Source: Ranitomeya imitator | Taxonomy: Eukaryota | DNA length: 64,000 nt | Assembly: GCF_032444005.1 (NCBI RefSeq) | Contig: NC_091282.1 | Coordinates: forward strand, 247,690,001 to 247,754,000 | Direction of reading: 5' to 3' | Shown here: positions 1,465 through 63,756 of the stretch, piece by piece | Layout of the letters: every line of letters starts with the position of its first letter | Position numbering within the stretch: position 1 is the stretch's first letter | Translations under genes and position numbers: made by a program | Notes under the pieces: generated by a model | Database searches by the model: none | What the model saw: the letters and a program-made list of their open reading frames with translations, nothing else | What the model was told of the DNA's origin: nothing

Positions 1465-2593
1465 GTCTAAACTGTGCATTCTAAGGTCCTACTTGCTGAG
1501 CATTTGGCTGTGATGGAAGAATCTGGCAGAGCAGAGATCCCATCAGAGCAACTCCAGGTCCTCCATAGAGGAAGCATGCACATGCTTCTCCTTTAGGATG
1601 AAGTTCCCCTTCTGAACAAAAAGTGTTTTTCACTCTGTATTTTAGGACAGAGGAGCCTTTACCGCATCTGTAGCATCACCTAATGAGGATGGCAGGAAAG
1701 AGTCTGGGAAGCTTAGGAGGTGTGCCATCTGCAGCAGTAAATTTCCTGAAACAATTGGGGAAACCGTTATGTGAAAACTGTATTTCTAAGATCATCAGGG
1801 AGGAGCAATCATCTTTTCTAACAGACATGAGATCCATGATTAGAGAAGTACAAGCGTCTATCTCCATTCTCCTTTCCCCGCATTCATCTCAGCCTGGTTC
1901 CCGTGTTAAAAGACCATAGTGGGAGATGGAGTTGAGTTCAGAGGAAGAAGTACACTCCATCGGATCAGTAAGAGGAAGAAGAGCGTGCCTCAGACCCTCT
2001 GGAAGAAGGGAAGAAATACTACTTCTCATTGGAAAATACAGATGCACTCCTTCGAGCAGTCCGGAATACCAATAAGGTAGAGGAAGCTCAGAAGTCTCAC
2101 TCTATCCAGGATGAGATGTTCGGGGGCCTAAGGTCCCATAGACATTGTCTTTCTGGTAAACAACCACATTCGCGCCATAATTATGGAAAAATGGGAGGAT
2201 GTGGGAAAAAAAAGACCTCGTGACTTTAGGCTATGTCTGCTCTTTGAGCCAGAAGATCTAAAATCCTGGGAGAAGATTCCGAAGATGGATGTCAGGGTGG
2301 CCAAGAAAACATCAATTCCGTTTGAAGATTCTTCGAGTGTTAAGGAGCCCATGGGTAGGAAGACAAACTGCCTTCTAAAAAGGATCTTGGAAAACTAATG
2401 TAGCTGACCCTTCAGTTGCCAGATCCATGCAGCTGTGGATCGACGATCTGCAAGAGCACTTAAAGGATAAGACTTCTAGGGAAGTTATTTTAAGATTCCT
2501 TCCCTTACCCAAATTAGCTACAGGATTCATGGCAGACACATGTGCGGAATCGGTCAGATTTGCTGCCAGAAATGGTGCCCTCTAAAATGCTGC

Positions 2594-5500
2594 CTGACTG
2601 GCTATTTGAAACCTTAAACTCCCTCCTGAAACCTAAAGTACAGGCCCCCATCACCAATCTCAGTGGTGAGGATCTGGCCACTTATTTCCTAGAAAAAATC
2701 AACCACATCCATCAGGATATCTCAGCCCAATCTCCTCAGTGCCTGGATCCCCTTCTCTGCCGCACCTCAAGCTCACTAGACATCTTTGAGCCTGTTTCAG
2801 AAGAAGAAGTTTCCAAGTTCCTCACTTCTGCTCGGCCTACAACCTGCAACAGTGACCCCATTCCTTGACATCTCCTGCAGTCTCTCTCACCAGTGGTCAC
2901 CACTCACCTGACTAAAATATTTAACCTCTCTCTCTTTCTTCAGGTATCTTTCCCTCCTCATTTAAACATGCCATCATAACCCCTTTACTTAAGAAGTCAT
3001 CCCTGGAGCAGAACTGCACTGCTAACTACAGACCTGCCTCTAACCTTTCCTTCATCTCTAAACTCCTGGAACGCTTGGTCCACTCCAGTCTAATTTGCTA
3101 TTTCTCGGATAACTCTCTTCTCGACCCCTTACAATCTCGTTTCTGCTCTTTTCACTCCACTGAAACTGCCCTCACTAAAGTCTCTAATGATCTAATAACA
3201 GCTAAATCCAAAGGTCATTGCTCTCTGCTGATTCTCCTGGATCTTTCTGCCGCATTTGACACTGTGGGTCACCAGCTCCTTCTCACTATGCTCTGCTCCA
3301 TAGACCTCAAGGACACAGCCCTCTCCTGGTTCTCCTCCTACCTCTCTGACCGCTCCTTCACTGTATCTTTTGCCAGCTCCTCTTCCTCTCCTCGTCCCCT
3401 TACTATCGGGGTTCCGCAGGGCTCAGTCCTGGGCCCCCTCCTCTTCTCTCTATACACGGCCCCTATTGGAGAAACATTCAGCAGATTTGGGTTCCAGTAT
3501 CATCTCTATGCTGATGACACCCAATTATACACTTCTTCCCCTGACATCACCCCTACCCTAATTCAAAATACCAAGGATTTATATAACCTTTTTCAAGAGA
3601 GTCAAACTCCAACATATGATTTTCCAACGTTTTTTTCAAGATGGGAGAGTGACTTGGGGATTTCTTTGTCTCAAGAGGAGAGGGACAAGATTTTATTGTT
3701 CACTTTTAGGACCTCGTTGTCTGCTGTATCACAGGAGAGGAGTTACAAGGTTCTGTCGAGGTGGTATAGATGCCCTTGCCAGGTTCATGCTATGTTCCCG
3801 GCGATTCCGGATATTTGTTGGAGATGTGCATCAGAAAAGGGACATATGTTCATATCTGGTGGGAATGCCCGCCTATAAAGAAACTTTGGATGTTAGTTTT
3901 TGATCTTCATAATAAATTATCCATCCGCAAAATACAGCCCACAGTGGAACTAGCCCTTTTATCTCTGTGTGACCTATCGATCTCTGGGTTTAAGAAGAGT
4001 CTTCTCAGACATTTTCTCACGGCTGTCAGGAACTTGATTCCTCGATATTGGAAGCAGGATCGCTACCCCTCATGCTCCGACTTTGTTGAGGAACTAAACA
4101 TATACAGAATGGAACAATTGATAAGCGAATCCACTGGGGATTCTGAGAAATGTTATAACATTTGGGCTCCATGGATTGTATTCAGGGAGACTCCAGAGCT
4201 GGACGTGTGGCTGTCTGGATCCTAATCCATATCTGAAACCGCTCTAGATACATTCATAAAGATGCTGCCCCTATACCCTAGCCTACTGTCATGGCTTAAA
4301 AACCAATGCCGGCAATATACTGATTTTCTCACCGCTACACGGGGACTGGGTCTGCCCGGGGGGGCGGGGGGGGTCGCATTCCCCGTACTTATCGTACCCT
4401 CTTATGTCTACCCACTTTTCTTTCTTTTTTCCTCCTCTTTTCCTTTCTTAACTTTTTCTCCTTCTATCTACTTTTTCTACTTTTTCTACTTAGTGACATT
4501 CTCTACTAAAATAAACGATTAAATATAGCTAGTAATGCTTGATTGCCTTCGCTGTTGTTTTATATGTTTCAACAATGAAAGTTATTATTGCTAAATTGAA
4601 AGTGATATCATTGGCATTGGCCAATAGCACCCAAAACTCGCTGGGACTTTCTCTTCCTGCCTAAATTATGGGTTGTATTCTATTGAGCTTAAAAACTATG
4701 TTTCAGCATTGTTCCATTGCTTGTATTATCTATTTGCTTCAATAAACTTGATTTATACAAAATACCAAGGATTGTCTGTCTGCTGTCTCTAACATCATGT
4801 CCTCCCTCTATCTGAAGCTAAATCTGTCCAAAACGGAACTTCTTGTGTTTCTCCCTTCTACTACATCACTCTACCCAACATCGAAATTACCCTGGAGGGT
4901 TCAACTATAACTCCCAAGCAGCATGCCCGCTGTTTTGGGGTCATATTCGACACCAACCTTTCCTTTACTCCCTATGTCCAATCACTCACTTGCTCTTGTC
5001 ACCTGCATCTTAAAAACCTCTCCAGAATCCGACCTTTTCTCCCCTTTGAAACTGCTAAGACTCTTACTGTTGCTCTTATTCATTCTCGTCTGGACTTGAT
5101 CGGTCTCCCTCTTACCAAACTTTCTCCTCTCCAATCCATCTTGAATGCGGCAACCAGGGTCATATTTCTGTCCAGCCGCTTCACCGATGCCTCCATCTTG
5201 TGCCAGTCATTACACTGGCTACCCATTCGCTACAGGGTCCAGTATAAACTCATCGCTCTCACCCACAAAGCTCTACACAGTTCTGCACCACCTTATATCT
5301 CCTCTCTCATCTCTGTCTATCGCCCTACACGTGCCCTCCGTTCTACAAATGACCGAAGACTAACATCCCCCGTAATCCGAACCTCGCACCTCCGTCTCCA
5401 AGACTTCTCACGTGCTGCGCCAGCTCTCTGGAATGCACTTCCCCAGACGATCAGACTGATACCTAGCCCCGACCTATTCAAGGGCGCTTTGAAAACCCAT

Positions 5501-5903
5501 CTCTTCAAACAAGACTACCACATCAACTACTCAGTAAACTAACTTTGCCCTGTTCCCTCCTTCCAAATATTATTCTGAATCTGCACCCTACTATTCATCT
5601 GTCTCCACACCCTCCATACACACGATAACTGCACTTGATACTTGACTATTGCACTTAAACACACGGGCTGATGACCGGATCATGCAGCTTTATATGAAAA
5701 TCCCTATTTATTATAATTGCCAGACCTGAAATAACAAGCACTTCTCACCTATTGTGTCCCCCCCATTTCATTGTAGATTGTAAGCTTGCGAGCAGGGACC
5801 TTACCCCTAATGTCACTGTTTAAATTGTCTTAACTTGTACTGAATTTATTGTCTGTACATGTCCCCGCTTAATTGTAAAGTGCTGCGGAATATGTTGGCG
5901 CTA

Positions 5904-5948
<45 letters not shown>
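2594..5948 (+). mobile_element. 5'-truncated L2/CR1-clade LINE inserted in DIRS-A gag
   Basis: ORF2 RT motifs ([42 protein letters not shown]), C-terminal LHWLPIRYRVQYK, 3' UTR and (ATT)n tail at ~5903-5948. Frameshifted. Confidence 0.92.
3580..4757 (+). mobile_element. 3' fragment of an L1/Tx1-clade LINE inserted in the L2
   Basis: L1 ORF2 cysteine-rich C-terminus (DICWRC...HIWWEC), AATAAA at 4741, and a 16-bp target-site duplication CAAAATACCAAGGATT at 3564-3579 and 4758-4773. Removal restores L2 IQNTKD/CLSAVS. Confidence 0.9.
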
Positions 5949-5973
<25 letters not shown>

Positions 5974-7801
5974 CTTGAAAATGTGGTGTGGGGGTAGTCG
6001 AAAAGAAGTTCTATTCTATCCCCTTCTCAAGATCTAGAGTATTCGGGCCCGTGCTAAATAAAATTCTAGAAAAGGCATCTGACACCAAAAAATGGTTTCC
6101 TGAGGAGAAGGCCAAGAGCTATCAGCCCTTTCATAGGTCCCGCCCCTCCCAGGGACTGGGTTATAAAGTGAAAGGGAATTCTTTTTCTTAGGGTCAGGTC
6201 TGGGAAGATAATGTGGCGGTATGCGTCGAAGGGCAGCTAAAGTTGTACATAGAAGGTTGGCTGGAAGTTTCCCAGGATCAGTGGGTTCTAAAAACTATAT
6301 CTTCTGGGTATATGATAGAATTCATCCCGTTTCCACCCGGTAGTTTTATCCTGATTCCCAGTCCCCTGCCGCCGTCTCCCATGAGGTCAGACATACAAGA
6401 TCTATTAAAAGCTGGAGCAATAATCCTATTTCTTCAGGGGGAATGATTCTAGGGTCACTACTCGAGCCTTTTCTCCATCAAAGAACCCTCATTTGCGTCC
6501 TGTACGATAATAAATTTAAAACCTCTAAATTGTTGAGTCAGATGCAAAAGGTTCGTGATGGAGTCAATCAAGTCAGGGATTCCCCTGATAGACAGAGATG
6601 CGGTAATGTGTACATCAGATTTAAAAAAAAAAAAATACTTATATTACCATGTCCCCATTCATCCTTTCTGTCAGAAATTTTTAAGATTCGCCATAAAATC
6701 TCGGGATCAGATTCATCACTTTCAGTTTCAATGTCTTCCATTTGGCCTAGCCTCAGCCCCTCAGGCATTCAGGAATATGGTAGCGGAAATAGTGGCTAAC
6801 ATAAGGAGAGTAGGTATCGCCATAATCCCCTATTTGGCCGATTTTTCTAATAACCAGATCCAGTTACGAACTTCTAGAACATCTTCAGATCTCGATATCT
6901 ACACTTCAGAAGCTAAGTTGGATAACAAATTGGAAAAAATCAGACCTAGTGCCAGGAACCAGGAAAAATTTCCTGGGAGTTCTTAGACTTCTGCCTAATG
7001 ACCTCATTTCTACCAGTAGAGAAACAGAGATCCGTAAAAGACAGGATTAATCTGTTCTCATGAAATCGTTATTACATCAGAGCGGCAATGAGATTCTTGG
7101 GGATTAATGACAGCCTGCATCCACTGGGTTGAATGAAGTCATTTCCATTCACGAGAACTCCAAAAGGCCATTTTATTAGCCTGGGACAGATGGCAGGGTA
7201 ACTTTGGACAACAAGATGCCCCTTCCCCTTGCTGTAAAAAGATCCTTGGTCTGGTGGACTTTTCCACAGAACCTTCAAGTAGGGATCCCATGGATCTCCT
7301 CTCCATGCGTGTTGGTTGCCACCAACGCAAGTCAGTTAGGATGGGGTGGTCGTCTGGAAGGGAAATTTCTTCAAGGGACCTGGTCTCCAAGTTCGGTCCG
7401 ATCTTCGATTTACAGGGAGCTTTGTGCTGTATGGGATGTTCTTCAACAGATCCAGTCTCTAGGCAAAAACGGGCATATAAAGGTTCTGTTGGACAATGTA
7501 ACAGTATCCTTTCTACACCATCAGGGGTGACCAAGACATCTGTTACTACAGGGTCTAGCTACAAAGATTTTCCTTTGGGTATAGAGAACAGTTCTGTCTG
7601 TTTTTCAGCAGTCCACTTAGAGGGGGCCCAAAACCAGTTGGTGTATTGCCTAAGCAGTCTTTCTGACCAGGTAATATCCACCATATAGGCAAGCAGGAAG
7701 CTGGTTACATCAGCCATATACAGTAAAATCTGGAAAAGATTTGGTTTAGAATGTGGGGAATCTACGGTGGATATTTCTGGTCCAAAAATTCCTAGAATTC
7801 T

Positions 7802-7835
<34 letters not shown>

Positions 7836-8271
7836 GCAGGGTTCAACAAAGGTTTAAGGCCAAGCACATGAACGGTTCAAATTTCAGTTTTAAGTGTCTT
7901 CTTTGACTTTACCCTAGCCTCTCACCCCTGGATAGCCAGATTTTCTAGGGCAGTCCAGAGTCTAAAACCCTTGGCGAGGAAATCCATTTCATTATGGGAT
8001 CTGAATTTAGTACTTTAATGCAAACATCCCTACGAGCCTGTGAGTGATGTGAATATCCGCAGACTTTCCTTTAAAACTGCTTTCTTGGTGGCAAGTGCAG
8101 AGTTGTCTAACAGAGATCCGCAAGTTCTGCAAGTTTATGATGACCGAATAGTCTTCAGATTTGATCCGGCCTTCCTTCCCAAGGTATTATCTACCCCAAA
8201 TATGAATCAGGAGGTGGCCTTGATCTCCTATTAGCATCTCAAGAACCAGAAAGAGCAGTTTTACTCGGACT

Positions 8272-8363
8272 CCCATGACAGCACGACGAGAGAGGGGATC
8301 CGCCCATTAGGAACAGGAAACCTACAGATACAAAAGGGCGGTACCTCTCCCTTGCCTCAGTTG
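8272..8363 (+). repeat. DIRS-C left inverted terminal repeat
   Basis: Exact reverse complement of 13674-13765 (92/92, checked base by base). Confidence 0.97.
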
Positions 8364-8946: not shown

Positions 8947-10496
8947 ATGGAGAGTGGTGGTGAGCAGCAGCAGCAGCAACGGTCAGACGAGGTGCGTCAG
9001 AAACCCAAGAAAGATGGAGGCGACCAGCCCAGTCGCAAAAGCTCATCCGAACAGGGATCCAGAGCTTCGACTAAGAAAGAACCCCCTCGGATTCCGGTAC
9101 TTGACTTTGGCGCACGGGTAAGTGAAATACGTGAAAGTTCACTCTGTGACGCGGGCCCCTTATACTTTATTTTCCAGGGGAAGAAGAGTACGGACAAGTC
9201 AAAACATAAGGAGTGTGCCCTCTGTGGAGTCCCCTTACCTGACTCTTGTTCGAAAAAGTTATGTGCCCCCTGTATACAACAGACGGTGAGGTCTACAGGA
9301 GTGGTTGGGTGGAAGTGACTTTAGGTCAGATAGTGGTTATCACCTATATTGTCCTCCCCTAGGTAGCAGAAGAGTCCGTGAGTACGGCAAACTTAAAAGA
9401 AATGATCCGGCTAGAAGTAAGGGAGTCATTACGATCCCTATCCCAAGCGGAAGGCTCGAAGCATAGGACCCCTCTGGACTCTAATTCGTCAGAAGAGGAA
9501 AGAGAAGAAAGTACCTATCTCTCTATTCCTTTCTCCTCTTCATCAGATGAGGAGTCTGGACGATTTTGTCTACCCTTGGATAAGATTGACAGGGTGGTCA
9601 AATCAGTTAGAGGCACGATGGGTATAGAGGAACCCAAATCACAGCCCTCAAAACAGGAGTTGATGTTTAGTGGATTAGATCGTAAAAAACATAGATCTTT
9701 TCCGGTAAATGAGAAGATCCAAGAATTGATCCTCCGAGAATGGAAAAAAACGGAAAAAAAGGGGGCCTTACCGCCAGCTTTAAAACGCAGGTATCCCTTT
9801 GATGATCTGGTTGTGGATACGTGGGATAAAGCCCCTAAGTTGGACGCGGCAGTAGCAAAAGCGTCAAAGAAAGCCTCATTACCCTTTGAGGATATGGGGT
9901 CCCTCAAAGATCCTCTAGACAGGAAGGCGGATATCTTCCTAAAAGGTACCTGGGAGATGGCGGCAGGATCCCTCAGACCAGCCGTGGCCGCAACATGCAC
10001 AGCCAGGTCATTAATGGTCTGGCTAGATCAATTAGAGTCTCAGCTTAAGGACGGTGCATCCAGAGATTCTATTCTGAAAGCGCTACCGACAATTCAGAAT
10101 GCTGCGGCGTTCCTATCGGACGCATCTGTGGACTCTGTCAGAATGGCGGCTAGGGCGGCAGGACTATCTAACGCGGCTCGCAGAGCCCTATGGTTAAAGT
10201 GCTGGTCAGGTGACATTCAGTCCAGAACTAAACTCTGCGCCATTCCGTGCGAGGGACAATATCTCTTTGGTCCAACGCTGGATGAATTGCTGGAAAAGGC
10301 AGGCGATGACAAAAAGAAGTTTCCCAGTCTGTACTCTGCATCCTACCGCCGACCCTTTAATCGAAGAAGGTTTGGTCGCGGGAAGAAACGCGGGTCCTCT
10401 CCCACTAGAGAAAGTTTCAGATGGGAAGACAGACCCGGTAGAGGTACGGGCTACATGTTTCGCCGTTCCTCAAAGGATCAGAAAAAACCGGAATGA
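8947..10496 (+). CDS. gag: DIRS-C Gag (ORF1), predicted spliced: exons 8947-9117, 9178-9285, 9363-10496 (~470 aa)
   Basis: Phase-0 GT-AG introns 9118-9177 (GTAAGT...TTTATTTTCCAG) and 9286-9362 (GTGAGG...TCCTCCCCTAG). Splicing joins the CALC...CAPC zinc finger to the 372-aa ORF at 9378. The splicing is predicted, not observed. Confidence 0.8.
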
Positions 10497-12397
10497 CTAG
10501 CGATCCCTGTGGAGGATAGACTGTCAGCATTCTCCTCAGCGTGGCTTGACATTACGAACAGTAAATGGGTCAGAGGCATTGTTACTAAAGGTCTAAGGCT
10601 GGACTTCAATCATTGGCCTCGAGAAAAATTCAAATTAACCCCTTTTCGTTCCTCCCCCCTGGAGCAAGCAGCTCTAGAAGCAGAAGTCATGAACTTATGC
10701 TCTAAAAACGTATTGGTGGAAATCCCAGAATCAGAAAGAGGAAGGGGATTTTATTCTCCTCTTTTTCTGATCAAAAAGCCAGATGGATCTTTTAGAACGA
10801 TCATAAATCTAAAATGTCTTAATGAGTTCCTGGTTAATGACTCCTTCAAAATGGAAACAATTAATTCAGCAATAAAAATGTTGTTTAATCGCTGTTTCAT
10901 GGTAGTTGTAGATCTTAAAGACGCATACTATCATGTTCCGATACATGAAGATTTCCAGAGGTTCCTGAGAGTAGCTGTGTCAATGGGGGGTCGCATTCGC
11001 CATTTCCAGTTCAGAGCTCTCCCCTTTGGCTTATCAGCGGCTCCTAGGGTGTTTACAAAACTAGTGGCCGAGGTCATGGCGCACTTACGAGAGTCCGACA
11101 TCCTGATCATTCCCTACTTGGATGATTTTCTTATAGTAGGGAGCTCAGCAGACCATTGCCTGTCCCAGCTAGAAACAGCCACATCCAAACTTGAGCGTCT
11201 GGGGTGGATCATAAATTATGAGAAATCTCGTTTACAGCCTCAAAAAATACAAAGATTCTTAGGACTGTTATTAAACTCAGAATCCCAACAGTGTTGCCTT
11301 CCACCCGACAAATTATTACATATCCAGCAACAGGTGTCTAAGGCAATTGACAAACCATCCATGACCCTTAGACAGGCTATGTCACTATTGGGTTCCTTAA
11401 CCTCTTGCATTCCCGCTGTCCGTTGGGCCCAATTCCACACCAGACCGTTACAATCTGAGGTGCTGGTTAATGATAGAATCTTACAGGGGTCCCTGCAGAG
11501 TCAGATTACCTTAGGTCCAAAAGCACTCACATCTCTTAGGTGGTGGCTAGTCAGTGAAAACTTATCGGCGGGAGTTCCCTGGGTGTCACAGGTAACACGT
11601 GTTGTAACAACAGATGCTAGCCCTTCGGGTTGGGGAGCACACATGGATGACATGATGGTTCAGGGTCTATGGCCCCCTCCCCTAACATCAGCCTCCTCCA
11701 ACCAGAAAGAGTTAATGGCAGTAGAGCTTTCAGTGAAAAAATTCCTCATATATCTGCAGGGTCATCATGTCAAGATCCTATCGGACAACCAGGTGGCGGT
11801 CACATACATAAATCATCAGGGTGGAACTCATTCCGAGTCACTGATGAGAGTGGCGGAATGTCTGTTCCAGACAGCGGAAAATCACTTCTTATCCCTAACC
11901 GCTCTACACATAAGAGGAGAAAAAAAAAAAACGTCAAAGCGGACTTTCTAAGCCGCAACACCTTGAGGCAAGGGGAGTGGTCCCTAAACAATTGCGTGTT
12001 CGATCAGATTGTCCACAGATGGGGACATCCAGAAGTAGATTTATTTGCTACCAGGGACAACCGGAAGACAACAAAATTCTGTTCCCTAAATCCCAGGGAG
12101 AATCCTCTGGCGGTAGACGCTTTTCTGATCAATTGGGATTTTCAGCTGGTGTATGCATTTCCTCCACTAGGCCTGTTACCCTTAGTAGTCAGGAAGATAA
12201 GAGAAGATCGAGCCAGAGTTATATTGATTGCCCCATTCTGGCCCAGAATGGCCTGGTTCACTTGGCTCAGGATCATGTCAGTGGAGGATCCCTGGGTGCT
12301 TCCGGAGATTCCGGATTTGCTCTACCAGGGTCCGATCAGTCATCCGCAAGTAAAGAACCTTCATTTAACGGCATGGATTTTGAAAGGGCGTTACTGA
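10497..12397 (+). pseudogene. pol: DIRS-C ORF2: reverse transcriptase, RNase H and DAM-methylase-like domain, with one frameshift
   Basis: DLKDAYYH, FRALPFGL, YLDDFL (RT); TTDASPSGWGAH, ELMAV, SDNQVAV (RNase H); DLFA...YAFPP (MT-like). Frameshift in an A12 run at 11920-11931. Confidence 0.92.
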
Positions 12398-13401
12398 AAA
12401 ACAAAGGGTTCTCCCCGAGTTTAATTGAAACCCTTATGAAAAGTAGGAAGCAAATAACCACAACAATCTACGCTAGGACCTGGCGAAAGTTTCTGGCCTC
12501 TTCTGATTTCAATTTAGAAGAAGGAATACCTATAAAACAAATCTTAGAATTCCTGCAAAAAGGCTTAGTTAGGTCTATCCACTAGTACTTTAAAGGTACA
12601 GGTCTCGGCCCTAGCGGCTCTATTCTCCTGTAACATCGCCAATAATTACTGGATCTCAAGGTTCATTAAAGCATCTTGTAGGTCTAGACCCATACATAAA
12701 GATAGATCTATGCCTTGGGATCTCAACTTAGTCCTATCAGCATTGGCTAAAGAGCCGTTTGAACCTTTACGATCAGCTTCAATTAAGGCCATATCCCTTA
12801 AGACAGCATTTCTTGGAGCAATTACATCTGCCCGTAGAGTAGGAGACATACAAGCTCTCTCCAGGGTTTCCCCTTATACAGAGTTTCTACCAGACAGAGT
12901 AATCCTCAGACCGGACCCAGCCTATTTACCAAAAGTATCATCACGGTTTCACAGGTCACAAGAGATAATTTTACCATCCTTCCTCCCCAATCCTGCTAAC
13001 CCTAAGGAAGAACTACTCCATACATTAGACGTTAGGAGATGTCTGCTAGAATACATCTGTTACTGACACATGGAAGAAAGATGATGCATTATTTTTCTTT
13101 CCAAAATCCTAGAAAGGGACTCAGGGTATCAAAGTACACGCTAGCAAAGTGGATTAGGGAGGCTATCTCTTTGGTTTATGCTGCAGGTGGGGGTCCGGCT
13201 CCGCAGAATCTGAGGGCGCATTCCACCAGGGCCATGGCTACGTCCTGGGCGGAAAAATCTGGAGTATCAATCGACCAGATATGTAAGGCGGCCACATGGT
13301 CATCCCCGTCCACCTTCTTTAAACACCATAGGTTGGATTTGGGGGCTTCCTCTGATCTCACATTTGAGTTAAGGGTGCTACAAGCCATAGTCCCTCCCTA
13401 A
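11977..13401 (+). pseudogene. DIRS-C ORF3: tyrosine recombinase overlapping ORF2, disrupted
   Basis: SARRVGDIQAL and LRAHSTRA motifs. Frameshifts near 12570, 13050 and 13090. The expected catalytic Tyr (HY in DIRS-D) reads HH. Confidence 0.9.
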
Positions 13402-13423
13402 GGTACCTTACATCTCTGTAATT

Positions 13424-13507
13424 CTCTCGTCGTGCTGTCATGGGAGTCCGAGTAAAGCATTAAGCTACTTACTGGTAGCGGCATTTCTCGGAGGCCCATG
13501 ACAGCAC
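13424..13507 (+). other. DIRS-C internal complementary region (ICR)
   Basis: 13424-13456 is the reverse complement of 8260-8292, and 13457-13507 is the reverse complement of 13753-13803; the halves join at AAA, complementary to the TTT core. Confidence 0.97.
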
Positions 13508-13673: not shown

Positions 13674-13806
13674 CAACTGAGGCAAGGGAGAGGTACCGCC
13701 CTTTTGTATCTGTAGGTTTCCTGTTCCTAATGGGCGGATCCCCTCTCTCGTCGTGCTGTCATGGGCCTCCGAGAAATGCCGCTACCAGTAAGTAGCTTAA
13801 TGCTTT
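13674..13806 (+). repeat. DIRS-C right inverted repeat plus right extension
   Basis: 92-bp inverted repeat, then a 38-nt extension ending ...AGCTTAATGC followed by TTT. Confidence 0.96.
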
Positions 13807-34958: not shown

Positions 34959-37900
34959 TATATATACCGGTATATATTTATTCAAACGTCCATAACAGCA
35001 CCACCTGAGAGGAGATCCGCCTTCAGGAACAGGAAACCTACAGATACAAAACGGCGGCACCTCTCCCACGCAACAGTTGGTTTCCTATTCCTAGAGGACA
35101 GGATGCCCTACAGATCGTCCATTTTTCGATCGTCAGGATTCCCAGGCCGGTTGTCCGGCTCAGGTAGAGGGGGGGGGGAGCGGGAAGGGGGGTTCCCTGG
35201 AAGCGCCACAACAGTGTGTGGAGCGGGGTCCGGAGGATTGCAGTCTCCAAAGCCAGCGCTGGAACGCAAGTATGCCCCCTGCTGGTGTGCTGTTCGGGCC
35301 TGTTCTGTGCACGGGGGGCCTGGCCGTGCCTTGGTGCTGCACCACTGTCCTCCTGCGCGTCCATTTGAGCTCCGGAAGTGACTGGGGGCCGGAAGTCAGA
35401 TGACGGCTGACTTTTTTTCCATGTGGGTGCCGCCGGGTCGTAGTGGTTTGGGCAGCGGGGGACGGAGCACGATGGGATGAACTACGGAGCGGGGAATTCC
35501 CTGGCTACACACACCCACCTGCTGACCTGGATTCTGGGGGAGGGCTATAAAATCCACATGACATGCTGCAGGGCTGCTTTTGGTCCATTGCAGCAATGGA
35601 TGAGCCAGAGGCTCCCTTGGAGCAGGAGCGTGCCTCAGAGAGGTCCCATGCAAACCCCCAGTTGAAAAACCGAGGACGAAGTGAGCAGCCTAGCCACAAA
35701 GGTTCTTCCAGGCTGAAGGATTCAGCTCGCTTCCCTGTGATCCGGTACCTACCGCTACTGCTTGGGTAAGAGATCTTTCGTGAATGTACCCTGATGCAGT
35801 GTTTCCCTTATTTATTTTTCTAGGGGAAGAAATGCTATGGTAAAACGAAAAACGGAATGTGCCCTTTGCAATTGCCTTTTGCCAGATACCTGTCCTAAAC
35901 TTGTTTGCAACAGACGGTAGGGGATTAAATAAAGATGGAGCAGTTGTCCTTAGTTAAGGCGTAGTCTTTAACTCTTTCCCCCACTTCTACAGGTGGTGGA
36001 AGAAACCCCTGACTTCACCGCAAGCCTAAGGGAGATTATTAGAATGGAAGTTAAGGATTCCCCAAAGTCCCTATCTCAAGGGGAATCTTCTAAGAAGAAA
36101 AGAGGAGCGAGTTTCTTAGGGTCAGAGTCCTCAGCTGCCCCTAGGAAAGGCGATTATTCTTCAGAAGCCTCTGCCTCTTCTTCTGCATCATCTTCAGAAG
36201 AGTACTCCAACTGTTTCTGCTTCCCCCTAGATCAGATGGCCAAGTTGTTCAAATCAGTAAGGTCCACTATGGGGGTAACGGTTTGGCGGCCTTGACCCTA
36301 AGAAATACAAATCTTTTCCGTTATATTACAAAGTTCAGGGCTTGATAACTATAGAGTGGAAAAGCCGGAAAAACGGGCTCTCTACCACCAGCCTTCAAGC
36401 GGAGATATCTCTTCGAGTACCCCTTGGTGAACAGATGGGATAAAGCCTCAAAGCTGGACGCAGCTGTAGCTAAAGCCTCCAAAAAATCCTCCATTCATTT
36501 TGATGATATGTCCTCCTTAAAAGATCCACTAAATAAGAAAGCGGACTCATTTCTGAAAGGGACGTGGGAAATGTCAGCTGGTACCCCAAGACCGGCGGTG
36601 GCTGCTACATGCACAGCCAGATCCATGATGGTCTGGCTGGACCAGCTTGAATCCCAGCTAGAAGATGGAGCCTCGAAAAATTCCATCTTAAAGTCCCTGC
36701 CAATAATTCAGAACGCCGCATCCTTTTTAGCCAATGCTGCGGCGGACTCAGCAAGGATGGCTGCCAGGGCCGCTGGACTATCAAATGCTGCACGAAGGGC
36801 TCTGTGGCTAAAGTGTTGGCCAGGGGACATCCAGGCCAGATCCTGTTTCTGCTCCATTCCATGTGAGGGAGAATATCTGTTTGGCCCGGATCTGGACGAA
36901 CTTCTGGAAAAAGCTGGAGACGATAAAATGAAATTCTCCAGTCTGCCGACCCCTTCTTAGACGTCCCTTCACCAGGAAAATATTTTTTTTCAAAGAAGGT
37001 CCAGAGATCAAGGCAGATGGGATGAAAAAAGGAGAGGTACTGGATTTATTTATTTAAGAAACCACACCAATGACTAGCGGCTGAGGTAGGCTAACTGCCT
37101 TCTACCCGGCCTGGTCCCTGACTTCTAATAGCAACTGGATTCTGGGGTTAATAGCCATGGGACTACGATTAGAGTTTTCCTGTATTCCTGAAACAGGTTT
37201 AAGATTACCCCACTCAGGTCTTCCCCATCGAAGCAGGCGGCCCTGGAAGTCGAAATTCATGACCTTTGCAGCAAAAAATCCTGACAGAAGTGCCGGAGGA
37301 AGATGGGGGGCAGAGGTTTCTACTCTCCTCTGTTCCTAGTCCGTAAGCCAGACTGCTCCTTTAGGACCATAATAAATCTGAAAGCCCTCAATGAATTTCT
37401 GGTCATACGGCCGTTTAAAATGGAATCAATCAATTCCACAATAAAATTGTTTGAAAACTGCTTTATGGTGGTATTAGATCTAAAAGACGCCTACTACCAT
37501 ATACCCATTCATGCAGCTCACCAGCAATTCCTTAGAGTGGCGGTTCATTTAGAGGGGTCGATCCGACAATTCCAATATGTTGCCCTTCCCTTTGGTATTG
37601 CAGTCGCCCCCCGAGTATTCACTAAGGTTATAGCTGAGGTAATGGCCCTTTTGCGTGAGTCAGTCATTCTAGTGATCCCCTACCTTGATGTCTTCCTTAT
37701 TATAGGCAAAACAGCGGCACATTAGTTGGAGCAATTACAAAAAGCAATGTCTGCCCTGGAGCGGTTAGGGTGGCTGCTAAACATCAAAAAATCCCGACTG
37801 CAGCCCATGAGAGTTCAGCAATTTTTAGGCCTAATCTTAGATTCCCAGAATCAGGAATGCCGTCTGCCTTCCAAAAAGTTAGTTCGCCTGCACTATCAGG

Positions 37901-38727
37901 TCCTGAGTGCCTCTAATAACCCCACCATGTCTCTAAGGAAAGCCATGTCTCTTTTGGGCTCTCTCTTGTCCTGTATTCCCGCGGTCCGGTGGGCCCAGTT
38001 CCATACAAGGAAACTACAGGGCGAGGTTTTGTTACGTCAAAAGATTTTGGGGGGTTATCTAGAAGGCCAGCTAACTTAATCCCGAAACGCTATAAAATCC
38101 CTCGATTGGAGGCTAGAGCGAAACAATCTAGCTAGAGGGGTACCCTGGGAATATAACATAACCCGTATAGTCACCACGGACACTAGCCCTTCCAGTTGGG
38201 GGGGCTCATATGGGTGAGGTTTTAGTCCAGGGATAGATGGCCTTCATCTGACGCGTGGATTTTGAACGGTCACTGCTGAAAGATAGAGGTTTCTCCCCAG
38301 GCTTGATTAATACCCTGTTTAAAAGCAGGAATGTAATCACTACCCAAATATACTTCAGAATCTGGAAAAGGTTCCTTCAGGACTCAGGGGTGGTAGCTGG
38401 TCAATCAACATCAATAAATCAGATTCTTGAATTCCTACAAAGAGGTCTGGACATGGGGCTATCCACTAGTACCCTTAAAGTGCAAGTGTCAGCCTTAGGA
38501 GCTCTTTTTAGCTGTAACATTGCCGGTAATCACTGGATCAATAGGTTCATTAAGGCGGCAAGTAGGTCCAGACCAGTAGTAAAAGATAGGTTCATGCCGT
38601 GGGATTTAAACCTAGTCCTCACGGCCATGACAGAGGCCCCATTTGAACCTATCTCAGCGGCCTCCATAAAAAAACCTGTCCCTCAAAGTAGCCTTCCTGG
38701 TAGCACTGACATCAGCTCGTAGAGTAA

Positions 38728-39123
38728 AGGTACCGTCACACTCAGCGACGCTGCAGCGATATAGACAACGAGCCGATCGCTGGAGCGTCGCTGTTTTAGG
38801 TCGCTGTAGAGACGTCAAACACAGCAACTCCATAACTATGCAGGAGCGATCCAGTGACGTAACGACGACTCACTTATCGTTCTCGCTGGTTGTTAGCTCC
38901 ATGCAAAATGTTGCTGGCATCGTTGCTTTTGATGTCAAACATGACGATACACGCCGACCTGACGACGAAATAAAGTTCTGGACTTCTAGCTCCAACCAGC
39001 GATGGCACAGCGGGATCCAGATCGCTGCTGCGTGTCAAACACAACGAGATCGCTATCCAGGACGCTGCAACGTCACGGATCGTTGTCGTTCTCGTTGCAA
39101 AGTTGCTGAGTGTGACGGTACCT
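38728..39123. mobile_element. Harbinger-like MITE, AGGTACC family, in the DIRS-D recombinase
   Basis: TAA duplication; removal restores TCA GCT CGT AGA GTA AGT GAC ATC CAG (SARRVSDIQ). Confidence 0.9.
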
Positions 39124-39135
39124 TAAGTGACATCC

Positions 39136-39360
39136 AGGCTTCCTCCTTATACACAATTTGGAGATGATGACCCTCTCCTAGTGTATCCTCACCCATCCCC
39201 TGCAGACTGTGAGCCCTCGCGGGCAGGGTCCTCCCTCCTTATCTACCGGTGTGCCTTGTTTTTTGCTCATGTTTAGTTGTATTTGTCTATATTTGCCCCC
39301 TTTTCACATGTAAAGCGCCATGGAGTAAATGATGCTATAAAAATGTACAATAATAATAAA
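39136..39360 (+). mobile_element. Short 3' end of an L2/CR1-type LINE in the DIRS-D recombinase
   Basis: GACTGTGAGCCCTCGCGGGCAGGG...TGTAAAGCGCCATGG...AATAATAATAA resembles the L2 3' end at 5770-5950; the recombinase resumes DRVILRPDP. Confidence 0.75.
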
Positions 39361-40280
39361 TGATAGAGTAATACTTAGACCTGACCCAGAATACCTGCCT
39401 AAGGTAGTCTCCAGTTTCCATAGAACGCAGGAACTAGTTCTTCCGTCCTTCATCCCTAATCCTGGTAACGAATAGGAAAAGAAACTCCACACCCTAGACG
39501 TTAGGAGATGTCTCCTAGAATACTTAGCAGTTATTGATCCCTGGAAAAAAGAGAACGCCTTGTTTGTCTCCTATCAGGGCACTAGGAAGGGGCCTTAGGG
39601 CATCAAAAATCATGCTAGCTAGGTGGATTAGGGAGGCTATTTCACCAGCATACATCTCGAAGGGCAGGTCGGCACCTGGAAGTCTGAGGGCGCATCCCAT
39701 TAGAGCCATGGCAACCTCGTGGGTGGAGAGATCGGAGGTTTTGATTGAAAAACATGCTTGGAGAGGGTCAAGTAGCTGCCTTACATATTTTGTCAATCAT
39801 TACAGACTAGATCCGGGTGCTTCCTCAGACCTCGCCTTTGGTGTAAGGGTGCTGCAGGCTGTAGTCCCTCCCTAATTAGTTATTACTCTCTGTAATTCTC
39901 TCAGTTGCACCTGTAGATTCCCTCCCTTCTTTTTTTAGTTCTGGGTGTGCACTTCCTCTTATGATCTACATTTTGGTGGAATAATTAATATTAATAGTAT
40001 TGTACATAAATCATGTCATTTACCTTGGTGGTCCTTTTGTGCTCTGTAATCCAACTGATGCGTGGGAGAGGTGCTGCCCTTTTGTATCTGTAGGTTTCCT
40101 GTTCCTGAAGGGAGGATCCCCTGTCTCAGGTGGTACTGTCATGGTGAGTAATTAAGACTTTTGGTTTGTGTTGCCATTTTCTGAGTCCTGTAGGAAAATA
40201 TTTTATTTTTTTATTTTTCCATTGAAGTGTGTGTGTGTGTTTTGGGATGCAGCCTCTGAGTGAACATAACTCAGCTTTTA

Positions 40281-49929: not shown

Positions 49930-52900
49930 AGGGGTCACCGAACCCTCACCAGAGCCCCCAGGCCGATCAGGATGAGCCAAATGAAAGGCACGAACAAGAT
50001 CGGCAGCATGAACATCAGAGGCAAAAACCTAGGAATTATCTTCTTGACCATAACCCTTCCACTTGACCAGGTACTGGAGTTTCCGTTTCGAAACACGAGA
50101 ATCCAAAATCTTCACCACATACTCCAACTCCCCCTCGACCAACACCGGGGCAGGAGGATCAACGGAGGGAACCATAGGCGCCACATATCTCCGCAACAAC
50201 GACCTATGGAACACATTATGGATGGCAAAAGAAGCTGGAAGGTCCAAACGAAATGACACAGGATTAAGAACCTCAGAAATCTTATATGGTCCAATGAAAC
50301 GAGGCTTAAACTTAGGAGAGGAAACCTTCATAGGAACGTGACGAGATGACAACCAAACCAAATCCCCAACACGAAGTCGGGGACCAACACAACGCCGGCG
50401 GTTAGCGAAACGTTGAGCCTTCTCCTGGGACAATGTCAAATTGTCCACCACATGAGTCCAAATCTGCTGCAACCTGTCCACCACCGCATCCACACGAGGA
50501 CAGTCCGAAGGCTCAACCTGCCCTGAAGAGAAACGAGGATGGAAACCAGAATTGCAGAAAAAAGGAGAAACTAAAGTAGCCAAGCTGGCCCGATTATTAA
50601 GGGCGAACTCAGCCAAAGGCAAGAAGGACACCCAATCATCCTGATCAGCAGAAACAAAGCATCTCAGATATGTCTCCAAAGTCTGATTAGTTCGTTCGGT
50701 TTGGCCATTAGTCTGAGGATGGAAAGCCGAAGAAAAAGACAAATTAATGCCCATCTTAGCGCAAAAGGACCGCCAAAACCTCGAAACAAACTGGGAACCT
50801 CTGTCCGAGACTATGTTCTCCGGAATGCCATGCAAACGAACCACATGCTGGAAAAACAATGGCACCAAATCAGAGGAGGAAGGCAGTTTAGATAAGGGTA
50901 CCAAATGGATCATCTTAGAGAAGCGATCATAAACCACCCAAATGACCGACATCTTTTGAGAAACAGGGAGATCAGAAATAAAATCCATGGAAATATGCGT
51001 CCAGGGCCTCTTCGGAATCGGCAAGGGCAAAAGCAACCCACTGGCACGAGAACAGCAGGGTTTAGCCCGAGCACAAATCCCACAGGACTGCACAAAAGAA
51101 CGCACATCCCGTGACAAAGAAGGCCACCAAAAAGATCTAGCCACCAAATCTCTGGTACCAAAGATTCCAGGATGACCAGCCAATACTGAACAATGAATCT
51201 CCGAGATAACTCTACCAGTCCATGTATCAGGGACAAACAGTTTCTCCGTAGGACAACGGTCAGGTCTATCAGCCTGAAACTTTTGCAGCACACGCCGCAA
51301 ATCAGGGGAAATGGCAGACAAAATTACCCCTTCTTTAAGAATACCCGCCGGCTCCGGATCACCCGGAGAGTCAGGCACAAAACTCCTTGACAGGGCATCA
51401 GCCTTCACATTCTTAGATCCCGGAAGGTATGAAACCACAAAATCAAAACGGGAGAAAAAGAGCGACCATCGAGCCTGTCTAGGATTCAACCGTTTGGCAG
51501 ACTCGAGATAAGTCAAATTCTTGTGATCCGTCAAGACCACCACGCGATGTTTAGCTCCTTCAAGCCAATGTCGCCACTCCTCGAATGCCCACTTCATGGC
51601 CAACAACTCCCGATTGCCCACATCATAATTGCGCTCAGCAGGCGAGAATTTTCTAGAAAAGAAGGCACAGGGTTTCATCACCGAGCCATCAGAACTTCTT
51701 TGCGACAAAACAGCCCCTGCTCCAATTTCAGAAGCATCAACCTCCACCTGAAAAGGGAGCCAAACATCTGGCTGGCACAACACAGGGGCAGAAGCAAAAC
51801 GACGCTTCAACTCCTGAAAAGCCGCTACAGCCGCAGAGGACCAATTGACCACATCAGCACCTTTCTGGGTCAAATCAGTCAACGGTTTAGCAATACTGGA
51901 AAAGTTAGCGATGAAGCGATGATAAAAATTAGCAAAGCCCAGGAACTTCTGCAAGCTCTTCACAGATGTCAGCTGAGTCCAATCGTAAATAGCCTGAACT
52001 TTAACAGGGTCCATCTCGATAGTAGAAGGGGAAAAAATGAAACCCAAAAATGAAACCTTCTGAACTCCAAAGAGACACTTTGACCCCTTCACAAACAAGG
52101 AATTCGCACGAAGGACCTGGAACACCATTCTGACCTGCTTCACATGAGACTCCCAATCATCCGAAAAGACCAAAATGTCATCCAAATATACAATCATAAA
52201 TCTATCCAAGTACTCTCGGAAGATGTCATGCATAAAGGACTGAAACACAGATGGAGCATTAGAAAGCCCGAATGGCATAACCAGGTACTCAAAATGGCCC
52301 TCGGGCGTATTAAATGCTGTTTTCCATTCATCACCCTGTTTAATTCGCACAAGATTATACGCCCCTCGAAGATCTATCTTGGTGAACCAACTAGCTCCCT
52401 TAATCCGAGCAAATAAATCAGACAGCAGCGGCAAAGGATACTGAAATTTGACTGTGATCTTATTAAGAAGGCGGTAATCAATACAAGGTCTCAAAGAACC
52501 ATCCTTCTTGGCCACAAAAAAGAACCCTGCTCCCAATGGTGACGACGACGGACGAATATGACCCTTCTCCAAGGATTCCTTTATATAACTCCGCATAGCG
52601 GCGTGCTCTGGCACAGATAAATTAAACAGACGGCCCTTAGGAAACTTACTACCAAGAATCAAACTAATAGCACAGTCGCAATCCCTATGAGGATAGGGCA
52701 CCAGACTTGGGCTCTTCAAATACATCCCGGTAATCTGATAAAAACTCAGGGACTTCAGAAGGAGTGGAAGGCGAAATTGACTGCAATGGAACATCACCAT
52801 GTACCCCCTGACAACCCCAGCTTGACACAGACATATATTTCCAATCCAATACTGGATTATGGACCTGTAGCCATGGCAACCCCAAAACGACCACATCATG

Positions 52901-54888: not shown

Positions 54889-57800
54889 GTGTGCCTAGTT
54901 CTCAACTGAGGCTGTCACAGTATAGCAGATAGGGTCGGACACAGAAGTAGTCTCTTATAGCCTGGGGCTGCCTTAGTTACTGTGTGTAATGCCACGCATT
55001 TACACAACAGCAAATAAGAATGGCAGCCCTCAGCGGCTCAGTTAGGAAGTTATAAAAAAAAAACACTTGACGCCATTTAATTTTATGCATTTATATATCA
55101 ACCTTTAAACATAAAGTCCAAATTACCTTTAAATCTACATTGCTATAAACATCATGGAAGAAATGTTATTCCCTCTTTGCGGCTCTTGAGCACATTTGTA
55201 ATCTATTGAAGCGCTGTGGTCGCCAGCCTTGTGGTTCTCCAACAGTTGCTGAACTGTAACTGGAATTTGTAATTATTTTCTAGGTTCTGATTATGTGGCT
55301 TGAAAAAATGGTCTGTCAATCACACTCTGAAAGGGTGGGGGAGTATTCTGAGCTCATCAATATGCCAGCTTTAAGGCCTTTGTGTCCTCAAGGCATGGTG
55401 TTCTTGGTTGCCAACTTATTAGCATATCGGGCACAAACATTCTACAACTGTACTCTTGAGATATCCTTGATTATTTTAGAAAACTAAGTCAACCTTAACC
55501 TCTGTTTATGTAACTGGTCGATAGTGGCGTTCGTGATCCTTTAACGAGGCTTTTGCTGCTCGCCGCTCTTCCAAAAGCCATGCTGGCAGTTTATGGATTC
55601 TGTCCATTTTTTAACATTGTCATTTCAACAATATTTTTATTTTCTATTAGATAAAGGTCCAGTATAATGTCTGTTTCTTTTGGGCTCATACTTTGCTTTA
55701 ATTATTATTTAGACAATGAAATATACCTAAATACCTTTGATCATTTTGTATTTTAGTATTAGATTTATAAGTTTTACTCATAGAAGCAATTACACAGGGC
55801 GTTGTCTTATATAGAGGTGTCGTTGTGTTAGGCCGGTGTCACACTTACAACTGCAATGCGAGAAACTCGCACTAAATACCCGACAATACCGCCAGCACTC
55901 GGGACTGGAGCGTTCAGCTGCATAGAAATATAGGACAAAAATACGTTTTCTGGAGGGCACCACAAAATGCATACGGGGATACACCTGAGGTCAATAAGAA
56001 ACAATCATAATTATGCATAGAAAAAGCTAAAGACCACAACAGGGATCACCACAAAATACAAAAAGGTTTTATTGAATACACAGCAGACAAATACCAATAA
56101 AAACATTTAAAAAGTCATAGACATGACATATGAACTACCCAAACGGCTTGTGATAGAGCCTAAGGACGTCCCTCAACAGGCCATGGTATATAAATATAAC
56201 AGAGATATTTACCAAGATATCAGTGCGTATCATGCAGAATGCACTATCCCATAAGACTAATATTGCACATTCAAAAGTGAAAATGCAGAAAATCATTTAG
56301 AAAAACAGTGATAGAATACTGCCTAAATCTCCTGTGTGTACAACCCATTCCCGATTCATATTCAAAGAGGTTGTGTCCAAGCTGCCTAAATCAGACCTTA
56401 CAGGACGAGGCTGCGGTTACAACCACTAATATCAGGGCCATAATTAGGCAGGAGATCCAATCTCTGGGATCAAAAAGCCTAAAAAAACAAGAAAGCAAAA
56501 GCTTTTCCCCCGTCTCCAGTTCAGAGTTTGAGATGGGCTTAATCCGTTCCTCCAGTACCTCAGGATCATCATCCAGTTCTTCTGAGGATGAGGGCGGAGC
56601 ATGCTTTCCAGTTGACAGCATAGACAATCTTATAAAATCCGTGAGAAACACTATAAGTTGTCCAGACACTAAGGGGGTCAGATAAGCACAGGATATTATG
56701 TTTGCAGGCCTAGGCCACAAAAAACGGCGAGCTTTCCCAGTCATTTCCGCCATCAAAGACCTTGTAAAAAAAAAGAATGGGACAAACAAGGTAAGGGGTT
56801 TCTCCAATCCTCTTCCAAAAGGCGTTACCCCTTCAGTGATGAAGAGTTAGCAGCGTGGTCCAAGGTCCCAAAAGTGGATGCGGCTGTGGCATCCACCTCA
56901 AAACAGTCATCTCTCCCTGTTGAAGATGCAGGAATCTTACTAGACCCATTAGACCGTAAAACCGAAGCTCTTCTTAATCCCATATGACGTACTATCCCAT
57001 CAAGGTGCCCTGGGACTCAATTCCCAGTGACAGGATAGTACGTCATATGCGATCGGCCGCGCTCACGGGGGGAGCGCAGCCGATCGCGGTCGGGTGTCAG
57101 CTGCCTATTGCAGCTGACATCCGGCACTATGTGCCAGGAGCGGTCACGGACCGCTCCCGGCACATTACCCCCCGGCACACCGCGATCAAACATGATCGCG
57201 GTGTGCCGGCGGTGCAGGGAAGCATCACGCAGGGAGGGGGCTCCCTGCGGGCTTCCCCGAGACCCCCACAGCAACGCAATGTGATCGCGTTGCTGCGAGG
57301 GTCTCCTACCTTCCTCCCTGCAGCAAGGCCCGGATCCAAAATGGCCGCGGCATCCGGGTCCTGCAGGGAGGGAGGTGGCTTACCAAGTGCCTGCTCAGAG
57401 CAGGCGCTTGGTAAGCCTGCACTGCTGTAAGTCAGATCGGTGATCTGACAGAGTGCTGTGCAAACTGTCAGATCAGCAATCTGTGATGTCCCTCCCCCCC
57501 CCCCCCCTCCCCGGGACAGAGTAAAAAAGTTAAAAAAAAAATTTCCACATGTGTAAAAAAAAAAATAGAAAGAAAAAATTCCTAAATAAAGAAAAAAACT
57601 GAATCCCATAAATACATTTCTTTATCTAAATAAAAAAAAACAATAAAAGTACACATATTTAGTATCGCCACGTCCGTAACGACCCCACCTATAAAACTGT
57701 CCCACTAGTTAACCCCTTCAGTAAACACCGGAAGAAAAAAAAAGAGGCAAAAAACAACGCTTTATTATCATACCGCCGAACAAAAAGTGGAATAACACGC

Positions 57801-58446
57801 GATCAAAAAGACGGATATAAATGACCATGGTACCGCTGAAAACGTCATCTTGTCCCGCAAAAAACGAGCCGCCATACAGCATCATCAGCAAAAAAAAAAA
57901 GTTATAGTCCTGAGAATAAAGCGATGTCAAAATAATTATTTTTTCTATAAAATAGTTTTTATCGTATAAAAGCGCCAAAACATACAAAAATGATATAAAT
58001 GAGGTATCACTGTAAACGTACTGACCCGAAGAATAAAACTGCTTTATCAATTTTACCAAACGCAGAACGGTATAAACGCCTCCCCCAAAAGAAATTCATG
58101 AATAGCTGGTTTTTGGTCATTCTGCCTCAGAAAAATCGGAATAAAAAGCGATCAAAAAATGTCACATGCCCGAAAATGTTACCAATAAAAACGTCAACTC
58201 GTCCCGCAAAAAACAAGACCTCACATGACTCTGTGGACCAAAATGTGGAAAAATTATAGCTCTCAAAATGTGGTAACGCAAAAAATATTTTTTGCAATAA
58301 AAAGCGTCTTTCAGTGTGTGACGGCTGCCAATCATAACAATCCGCTAAAAAACCCGCTATAAAAGTAAATCAAACCCCCCTTCATCACCCCCTTAGTTAG
58401 GGAAAAATAATAAAATAAAAAAAATGTGTTTATTTCCATTTTCCCG

Positions 58447-58720
58447 TTAGGGTTAGGGTTGGGGCTAGGGTTTGAGCTAAAGTCTGGGTTAGGGTTGGGG
58501 CTAAAGTTAGGGTTAGGGTTGTAGCTAAGGTTAGGGTTGGGGCTAAAGTTAGGGTTAGGGTTGGGACTAAAGTTAGGATTTGGATTACCTTTACGGTTGG
58601 GATTAGGGTTTGGATCAGGGTTAGGGGTGTGGTTAGGGGTACTGTTGGGATTAGGGTTAGGGGTGTGTTTGGATTAGGGTTTGGGGTGTGTTTGGATTAG
58701 GGTTTCAGTTAGAATTGGGG
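58447..58720 (+). repeat. Degenerate TTAGGG-like repeat inside the piggyBac-like element
   Basis: GTTAGGGTTAGGGTTGGGGCTAAA-type units. Confidence 0.85.
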
Positions 58721-58729
58721 GTTTCCATT

Positions 58730-63000: not shown

Positions 63001-63756
63001 ATTCTGCCAGTGATCCCAAACCTACTGTCTCAGGGTCCATTCTACGACCAGCAAGTGAAAGGTCTTCACCTAACGGTGTGGAACTTGAGAGGCAAATACT
63101 AACGTTAAGATGGTTTTCTCAAGAGCTAATTAACACATTACTGCTAAGTAGGAAAAAGTCTACAACTTTAATATATAGCAGAGTATGGAGAAAATTCCTC
63201 AGTTTCTATACAAAACCCTTCTCTAGCAAGTTTCCTATTAAAGCCATCCTAGAGTTTCTACAAAAAGGCCATGCACTGGGTTTATCAGTCAATACCTTAA
63301 GAGTTCAGGTGTCTGCCTTAGGAGCCCTTTATAGTGTTAACATAGCTGGTGACAGGTGGATAGCAAGATTCATTGGAGCATGCAAAAGGTGTACACAAGT
63401 ACATATCGCACGTTTACCGCCCTGGGACTTGAATCTAGTCCTCGATGCTTTAACTGAACCTCCTTTTGAGCCCTTATATTCTATTTCTCTAAAAAATATC
63501 ACATATAAGGTAGCCTTATTGATAGCCTTAACTTCTGCCAGAAAAGTGGGAGACATCCAGGCTCTCTCCATAGACCCTCTGTTCTTAATGACATACCAGG
63601 ACAGGGTAGTTCTCAAACCAGATCCATCATATCTCCCTAAAGTAGCAACAAACTACCATAGATCTCAAGAGATTTTTCTGCCTTCCTTTTATGACAATCC
63701 ATCAAATCCAGAGGAAGAGAAGCTACATTTGTTGGATGCAAAAAGAGCAGTCTTAA

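Follow-up and report, generated by a model that had tools for sequence, protein, structure and literature searches.

How does a retrotransposon make its Pol protein when gag ends in a stop codon and pol follows in the same frame with no early start codon? The question is raised by copy C, an element in a 64,000-nucleotide (nt) stretch of the frog Ranitomeya imitator (contig NC_091282.1, positions 247,690,001 to 247,754,000, forward strand). The whole stretch is called the window below, and coordinates without a sequence name refer to it. In the clade of copy C, Pol is quite probably made as a Gag-Pol fusion by programmed readthrough of UGA-CUAG. Readthrough appears to be the best explanation because gag and pol share a frame, UGA-CUAG is conserved, selection extends past the stop and no pol ATG is conserved.

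The gag-pol junction in copy C and its relatives

The features of copy C are listed below (ORF, open reading frame; RT, reverse transcriptase; dN/dS, ratio of non-synonymous to synonymous substitution rates). L009, L010 and L011 are related copies described further on, and slashes in sequences mark splice sites.

8260-8363, plus strand: left inverted terminal repeat (97% inverted match to 13674-13776)
8947-9117, plus strand: probable 5' gag exon, beginning with ATG 8947 (R. imitator models P0132 and P0161)
9118-9362, plus strand: probable 5' gag intron, 245 nt, CGG/GTAAGT ... CCTCCCCTAG/G (splice sites in the sequence; exon joins from gene models)
9402-10493, plus strand: main gag ORF, 364 codons from ATG 9402, LAP2alpha-like domain (PF11560; dN/dS 0.036 against L009)
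10210-10500, plus strand: +1-frame ORF over the gag tail, probable relic (homologous to the N-terminal pol extension found in sibling +1 families)
10491-10501, plus strand: putative recoding signal GAA-TGA-CTAG-C (longest invariant run in L009, L010 and L011; motif search)
10494-10496, plus strand: gag stop TGA, in frame with pol (frame reading)
10497-11948, plus strand: RT/RNase H ORF in the gag frame, 484 codons, no ATG before codon 65 (Pfam RVT_1, RT_RNaseH)
13674-13776, plus strand: right inverted terminal repeat (match to the left repeat)

The upstream gag ORF (9378-10496) and the downstream RT ORF (10509-11951) are both in frame 0. Straight translation across the junction gives an open frame of 372 codons, one stop and an open frame of 484 codons. 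The junction reads CCG GAA TGA at 10488-10496 and continues CTA GCG ATC CCT GTG GAG GAT AGA CTG. Direct reading of the region 10488-10520 confirms the preliminary description, according to which the gag TGA is followed by CTAG and by pol in the same frame. The first in-frame pol ATG, placed there at about 10688, lies at 10689-10691 and is codon 65.

The upstream protein matches the Pfam family PF11560, LAP2alpha (E 1.7e-20), a domain linked previously to the gag of DIRS1-like elements (PMC4495291, PMC9210276). The downstream protein carries the Pfam domains RVT_1 and RT_RNaseH. The termini are 103-nt inverted repeats, 97% identical, and internal matches at 13423-13507 pair with them, a hallmark of DIRS1-like elements. 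The inverted repeats and the gag and RT/RNase H content therefore make copy C a DIRS1-type retrotransposon; it is a member of a dendrobatid-frog clade of DIRS1-type tyrosine-recombinase elements. Homologues of the ORFs at 11669-13401 occur in copies D and E of the window; in the search for a tyrosine recombinase ORF these downstream ORFs gave no Pfam match at E <=0.01. The pol frame of copy C ends early, at 484 codons, where L009 has 544 and L011 has 631, and the distal ORFs are in other frames. For these reasons copy C is probably damaged distally and not autonomous.

A protein search with Pol returned frog relatives only, at no more than 68% identity, and a search with Gag returned R. imitator proteins 91-95% identical to that of copy C (95% for P0121). 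The DNA surrounding twelve related proteins was fetched, and L009, L010 and L011 group with copy C. L009, from R. imitator, is a full copy with 91% nucleotide identity to copy C over 5.5 kb. At the amino acid level L010, from Dendrobates tinctorius, is 72% identical to copy C in Gag and Pol, and L011, again from R. imitator, 58-61%; over all three relatives the Gag and Pol identities range from 58 to 95%. In every one of them (3/3, two species) gag and pol share one frame over a single TGA-CTAG:

L009: ...GAC CAA TGA CTA GCG ATC CCT
L010: ...AAT CAA TGA CTA GCA ATT CCC
L011: ...ACT CAA TGA CTA GCG GTC CAG

None of the three has a stop inside gag or across the first 400-477 pol codons. TGA-CTAG, at 10494-10500 in copy C, is present likewise in copy D, L009, L010 and L011. 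Copy C is one codon shorter before the stop, with GAA where L009 has GAC CAA; the Gags of four more R. imitator family members (P0121, P0164, P0168, P0167) end in ...K(P/T)DQ, like that of L009. Further downstream, at about pol codon 400, the 796-codon frame of L010 parts from the RT/RNase H frame; the distal ORF of L011 contains 3 stops. In the NCBI annotation, gag of L009, L010 and L011 is a single exon ending at the TGA. No NCBI Pol model of the copy C clade was found among the protein-search matches, annotation pipelines calling gag only.

Searches of the window with copy C (tblastn and blastn) located three more copies: A at about 2150-8231, with an interrupted gag, D at about 34977-40150 and E at about 56287-63770. 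Copy D, a decayed member of the copy C clade, retains the motif despite its decayed flanks, as the preliminary description had stated:

37068-37079, plus strand: copy D motif CAATGACTAGCG (motif search, Pol tree)

The 10-mer AATGACTAGC occurs 2 times in the window, with 0.12 occurrences expected. CAA-TGA-CTAG-C is kept in copy D; indels flank the junction, the local frame is unreadable, and there are 4 stops in 350 pol codons. The main gag frame of this copy is the same as its main pol frame.

Invariance was scored in L009, L010 and L011 on a codon alignment of gag and 470 pol codons (2604 nt, the stop being written as X). No invariant run is longer than the 11 nt of CAATGACTAGC, which is centred on the stop; the runner-up has 9 nt, RT motifs reach 8 nt at most, and 45% of the columns are invariant. 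Bases +4 to +7, whose conservation the preliminary description proposed to check, do not vary. Judged from this alignment, the stop and its 3' context are conserved at the nucleotide level beyond the coding requirement. No significant RNA structure was found 3' of the stop (folding z 0.29; consensus fold -9 kcal/mol with little covariation), pseudoknots being outside the scope of the tool.

Purifying selection acts on both sides of the stop. For copy C against L009, dN/dS stands at 0.036 in gag; in pol it is 0.086 for codons 1-118 and 0.105 for codons 119-470. The value for codons 1-118 argues that the sequence directly 3' of the stop is translated. Synonymous sites are saturated when copy C or L009 is compared with L010 or L011, and the substitution patterns indicate that the lineages diverged under selection. 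Apart from the gag stop, about 850 codons of copy C and of L009 are free of stops despite dS of 0.24-0.6. The first in-frame ATG of pol is codon 119, inside the RT domain, in L009, L010 and L011, and the ATG at pol codon 65 of copy C reads ATC (Ile) in L009; no upstream ATG belonging to pol is conserved. Conservation of the residues following the stop, attributed by the preliminary description to copies A and E, holds for E; copy A is too decayed to be informative on this point (10 stops in 356 pol codons).

Sibling families and other copies in the window

In seven other lineages the gag tail is overlapped by a pol in +1, and gag stops at the homologous TGA:

Bufo gargarizans L003, about 4190-4215: gag stop CAA TGA CGC, pol +1
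Logan contig L007, about 220-245: gag stop CAA TGA CGG, pol +1
R. imitator L012 and L013, about 4500-4530: gag stop CAA TGA AGG, pol +1
Phyllobates terribilis L014, about 4705-4735: gag stop AAG TGA CAG, pol +1
R. variabilis L004-L006: gag stop CAG TGA TGA, pol +1
R. variabilis L008: gag stop TAC TGA GGA, pol +1
D. tinctorius L001 family: gag model P0130 ends KKSPQ, then stop, pol +1

In L008, the NCBI model P0021 joins gag to pol via a 94-nt intron (L008:3333-3426), with the donor G/GTGAGT right after CAIPCEG and the acceptor TTCCGTTTTACAG/G. Since 94 = 3n+1, removal of the intron shifts gag into the +1 pol frame. L005 has the same intron sites. In this clade the spliced RNA would encode Gag(deltaC)-Pol, and the unspliced RNA would encode Gag with a basic tail. 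Copy E of the window belongs here:

61018-61255, plus strand: copy E, sibling-clade contrast, with GTGAGT donor at 61018, acceptor remnant at 61102-61117, TAATGA at 61250-61255 and pol +1 (77% pol identity to L005)

The preliminary description had correctly noted in copy E a TAATGA and a pol frame that is off by one, here relative to the gag tail; the copy represents a sibling clade with +1 pol and the 94-nt intron. Its donor is kept. The acceptor AG has lost its A, which places gag and pol of this decayed copy in a single fused frame.

The 94-nt intron sites (CxIPC(E/Q)G donor, polypyrimidine-YAG acceptor) are absent in copy C, L009, L010 and L011. In copy C the donor position (10253-10260) reads GGGACAAT and the acceptor position (within 10341-10354) reads TACCG/CC; with both sites missing, such an intron in copy C was rejected. 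A +1 shift at the stop in the copy C clade would immediately meet the TAG of TGACTAG. The clade thus has none of the devices that its relatives use (its pol is not in +1, the TAG blocks a +1 shift, and the 94-nt intron sites are missing), which counts for readthrough.

The +1-frame ORF over the gag tail of copy C (10210-10500) is open for 96 codons and ends at the same TAG (...N-D-stop), and this frame is open for at least 40 codons in L009-L011. It is homologous to the N-terminal extension of pol in the sibling +1 families and probably a relic of an older layout. Between the TGA and the conserved CAGGTGGG lie 10 nt in L012 and L014 and 9 nt in L011, a difference of one nt. In the best maximum-likelihood topology of the Pol tree, the five TGACTAG rows (copy C, L009, L010, L011 and copy D) form one clade nested among the +1 lineages, with L012 and L014 nearest to it. 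Most simply, and most likely as far as the tree and the spacing tell, the in-frame UGA-CUAG layout would be a single derived change from the +1-overlap layout, that is, one nt in spacing plus CTAG.

The +1 families without the intron keep [C/A]A[A/G]-TGA-[C/A] at the gag stop, and pol reads xAT GAx one nt later. One possibility, by analogy with antizyme or RF2, is a +1 frameshift at a slow UGA; the long open pol-frame overlap may result simply from an A/G-rich gag tail. We suggest tentatively, as a possibility with nearly as much to be said for it as against it, that the coupling of Gag to Pol has been swapped repeatedly in frog DIRS1 elements: an ancestral +1 overlap on CAA-UGA-C, possibly with antizyme-like frameshifting, would have given way to the 94-nt intron and, by a one-nt spacing change, to UGA-CUAG readthrough.

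A fused single-ORF Gag-Pol was considered as the family norm and rejected for P0001 (L001:4001-6346), which differs from P0130 by a small indel beside an A-run. The L001 hexamer AATGAC is read in frame as AAT GAC, and P0001 is a continuous, stop-free ORF. A second annotated single-exon continuous gag-pol ORF is P0062 (L002:4001-6103). Gene predictors favour such mutant fused gag-pol copies.

Copy A is uninformative on the mechanism. Its in-frame TAG at 6189-6191 was considered as a homologue of the gag stop and rejected: the true homologue is AATGTG at 6210-6215, 6 codons downstream, and the TAG is a decay artefact. Gag homology in this copy is split by about 3.4 kb, the part up to residue 259 ending at 2570 and the remainder resuming at 5979, which suggests an insertion. 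A distant RT fragment (52030-52626, minus strand) has 26% identity to Pol of copy C.

Possible splicing, independent initiation and decay

The 5' part of gag does contain a candidate intron. The 245-nt intron of copy C (9118-9362) has strong splice sites, and two R. imitator models, P0132 and P0161, join the same exons: their alignment covers 8947-9126 and resumes at 9363. The model P0154 has two smaller introns flanking a Cys-rich exon. This small exon (CxxC...CxxC, about 9190-9306) is skipped or included by R. imitator models and has its homologue in the N-terminal portion of longer Gags from other families. There is also a single-exon gag model, P0121, which starts at the ATG equivalent to 9402. 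Gag may be made from a spliced mRNA; the 5' gag splice is upstream of the stop-codon event and independent from it. Of the two-step scheme of the preliminary description (splice plus readthrough), the splicing part is plausible, as the intron matches gene models, but separate: readthrough is independent of the splice, and the single-exon P0121 is present too.

Splicing could also act at the junction itself. It would then either excise the gag stop or connect pol with an exon that carries an upstream AUG, Pol would be translated from the resulting mRNA, and TGACTAG would belong to a splice or branch signal. Precedents are the frame-shifting 94-nt intron that sibling families carry in the gag tail (P0021 on L008) and the good 5' gag intron of copy C itself. 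However, the sites of the former are missing in 4/4 in-frame elements, and there is no pyrimidine tract 5' of the TAG. A candidate in-frame pair, donor -284 and acceptor +46, is found in copy C, L009 and L011, but L010 has neither site. Moreover, the pair coincides with conserved codons (G-D; S/P-A), and its use would remove the conserved PVGGRL start of pol. The intron from -284 to +46 around the stop was therefore rejected as unconserved in L010, and no splice pair spanning the stop is conserved across copy C, L009, L010 and L011. Given also that the NCBI gag models in L009, L010 and L011 are single-exon and end at the TGA, we consider this route to Pol improbable.

An equally poor candidate is independent translation of Pol, by non-AUG initiation, by reinitiation after gag or by internal entry near the stop, the shared frame being incidental. 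Termination-reinitiation couples ORFs in some elements, and suitable codons are at hand: an AUG overlaps the stop (A-AUG-A), and the near-cognate codons CUA and GUG follow it. However, the overlapping AUG opens the third frame, which closes after 8 codons. Independent initiation would require neither the same frame nor the exact CUAG, yet both have persisted while synonymous sites became saturated. In the nearest relatives pol stays in +1, and the frame thus evidently matters for the coupling.

That the junction is functionless, an in-frame stop arisen by chance or decay in dead copies, is very improbable: copy C is indeed damaged distally, copy D is decayed and the in-frame TAG of copy A arose by decay, but dN/dS is 0.04-0.1 across the junction, about 850 codons are stop-free in copy C and L009 despite dS of 0.24-0.6, and three lineages, from two species, carry an identical motif. 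For decoding of the UGA as selenocysteine no indication was met, no search aimed at a SECIS element having been made.

A proposed readthrough model

Programmed readthrough in the copy C clade, as proposed already in the preliminary description and favoured by the retention of TGA-CTAG and the shared frame in L009, L010 and L011, would proceed as follows. Most ribosomes translating gag would terminate at the UGA and release Gag. A minority would decode the UGA by a near-cognate tRNA, owing to the weak context CAA-UGA-CUAG-C; two adenines preceding the stop, as in CAA, are said to promote it as well. These ribosomes would stay in frame and continue into L-A-I-P-V-G-G-R-L... and the RT domain. 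The outcome would be Gag in excess of Pol, as is typical of retroelements. Both the readthrough event and its rate are predictions from sequence.

Several observations weigh against this model. No complete element has been demonstrated among copy C, L009, L010 and L011, given the early closure of pol, the frame change and the distal stops. The sample of junctions from the clade consists of four readable ones and one decayed. Copy C itself carries GAA rather than CAA before the stop. On the Pol tree the TGACTAG clade is weakly supported (31/23). Finally, the absence of 3' structure fits the CUAG class, yet it removes one potential line of support.

UGA-CUAG is a readthrough motif defined by mutagenesis, with about 3.5-31% readthrough in vertebrate reporters; it is also present in several alphaviruses and requires only about 12 nt 3' of the stop (PMC4132726). 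The genes with this motif (OPRK1, OPRL1, AQP4, MAPK10, MDH1) and the alphavirus nsP3/nsP4 junction (PMC4132726) share with the copy C clade the same 7-nt signal and its conservation at the nucleotide level, and likewise show no detectable dependence on a distant 3' structure. The version in OPRL1 and Getah virus, UGA-CUAGGC, begins as in the copy C clade, its next two bases being given as GC. The differences are that here the motif is in a retrotransposon, that the Pol extension has at least about 480 codons, unlike the short C-terminal extensions of those genes, and that CAA is invariant too (L009, L010 and L011).

A second parallel is murine leukaemia virus (MuLV), a gammaretrovirus. There too, a lone stop divides gag from an in-frame pol that lacks an independent start, and leaky termination sets the ratio of Gag to Gag-Pol. 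However, the viral signal is UAG-G with a downstream pseudoknot (about 8 nt), whereas the frog signal is UGA-C with no significant structure. In addition, the frog element is of the tyrosine-recombinase type, with no protease or integrase in the scanned ORFs. The sibling frog DIRS1 families with +1 pol resemble the copy C clade in the LAP2alpha-like gag, the pol start PVGGRL... and the homologous TGA, which mostly comes right after CAA or CAG. They differ in that pol overlaps the gag tail with a phase offset of one nt, and in that no CTAG follows the stop.

The expression of Pol in DIRS (tyrosine-recombinase) retrotransposons is essentially undescribed. The DIRS literature that was searched reports overlapping ORFs only, does not mention readthrough and offered nothing relevant on stop codons, an older remark on the frame layout being possible. 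If confirmed, this would be the first case found in which a retrotransposon makes Gag-Pol by means of the vertebrate UGA-CUAG motif, and an amphibian genome would hold a large collection of readthrough sites, replicated naturally. Comparison with the sibling +1 and intron families makes these elements a tractable system for the replacement of recoding mechanisms. If the repeated swap is true, it would be a natural experiment in which splicing, frameshifting and readthrough are interchangeable means of setting the Gag:Pol ratio.

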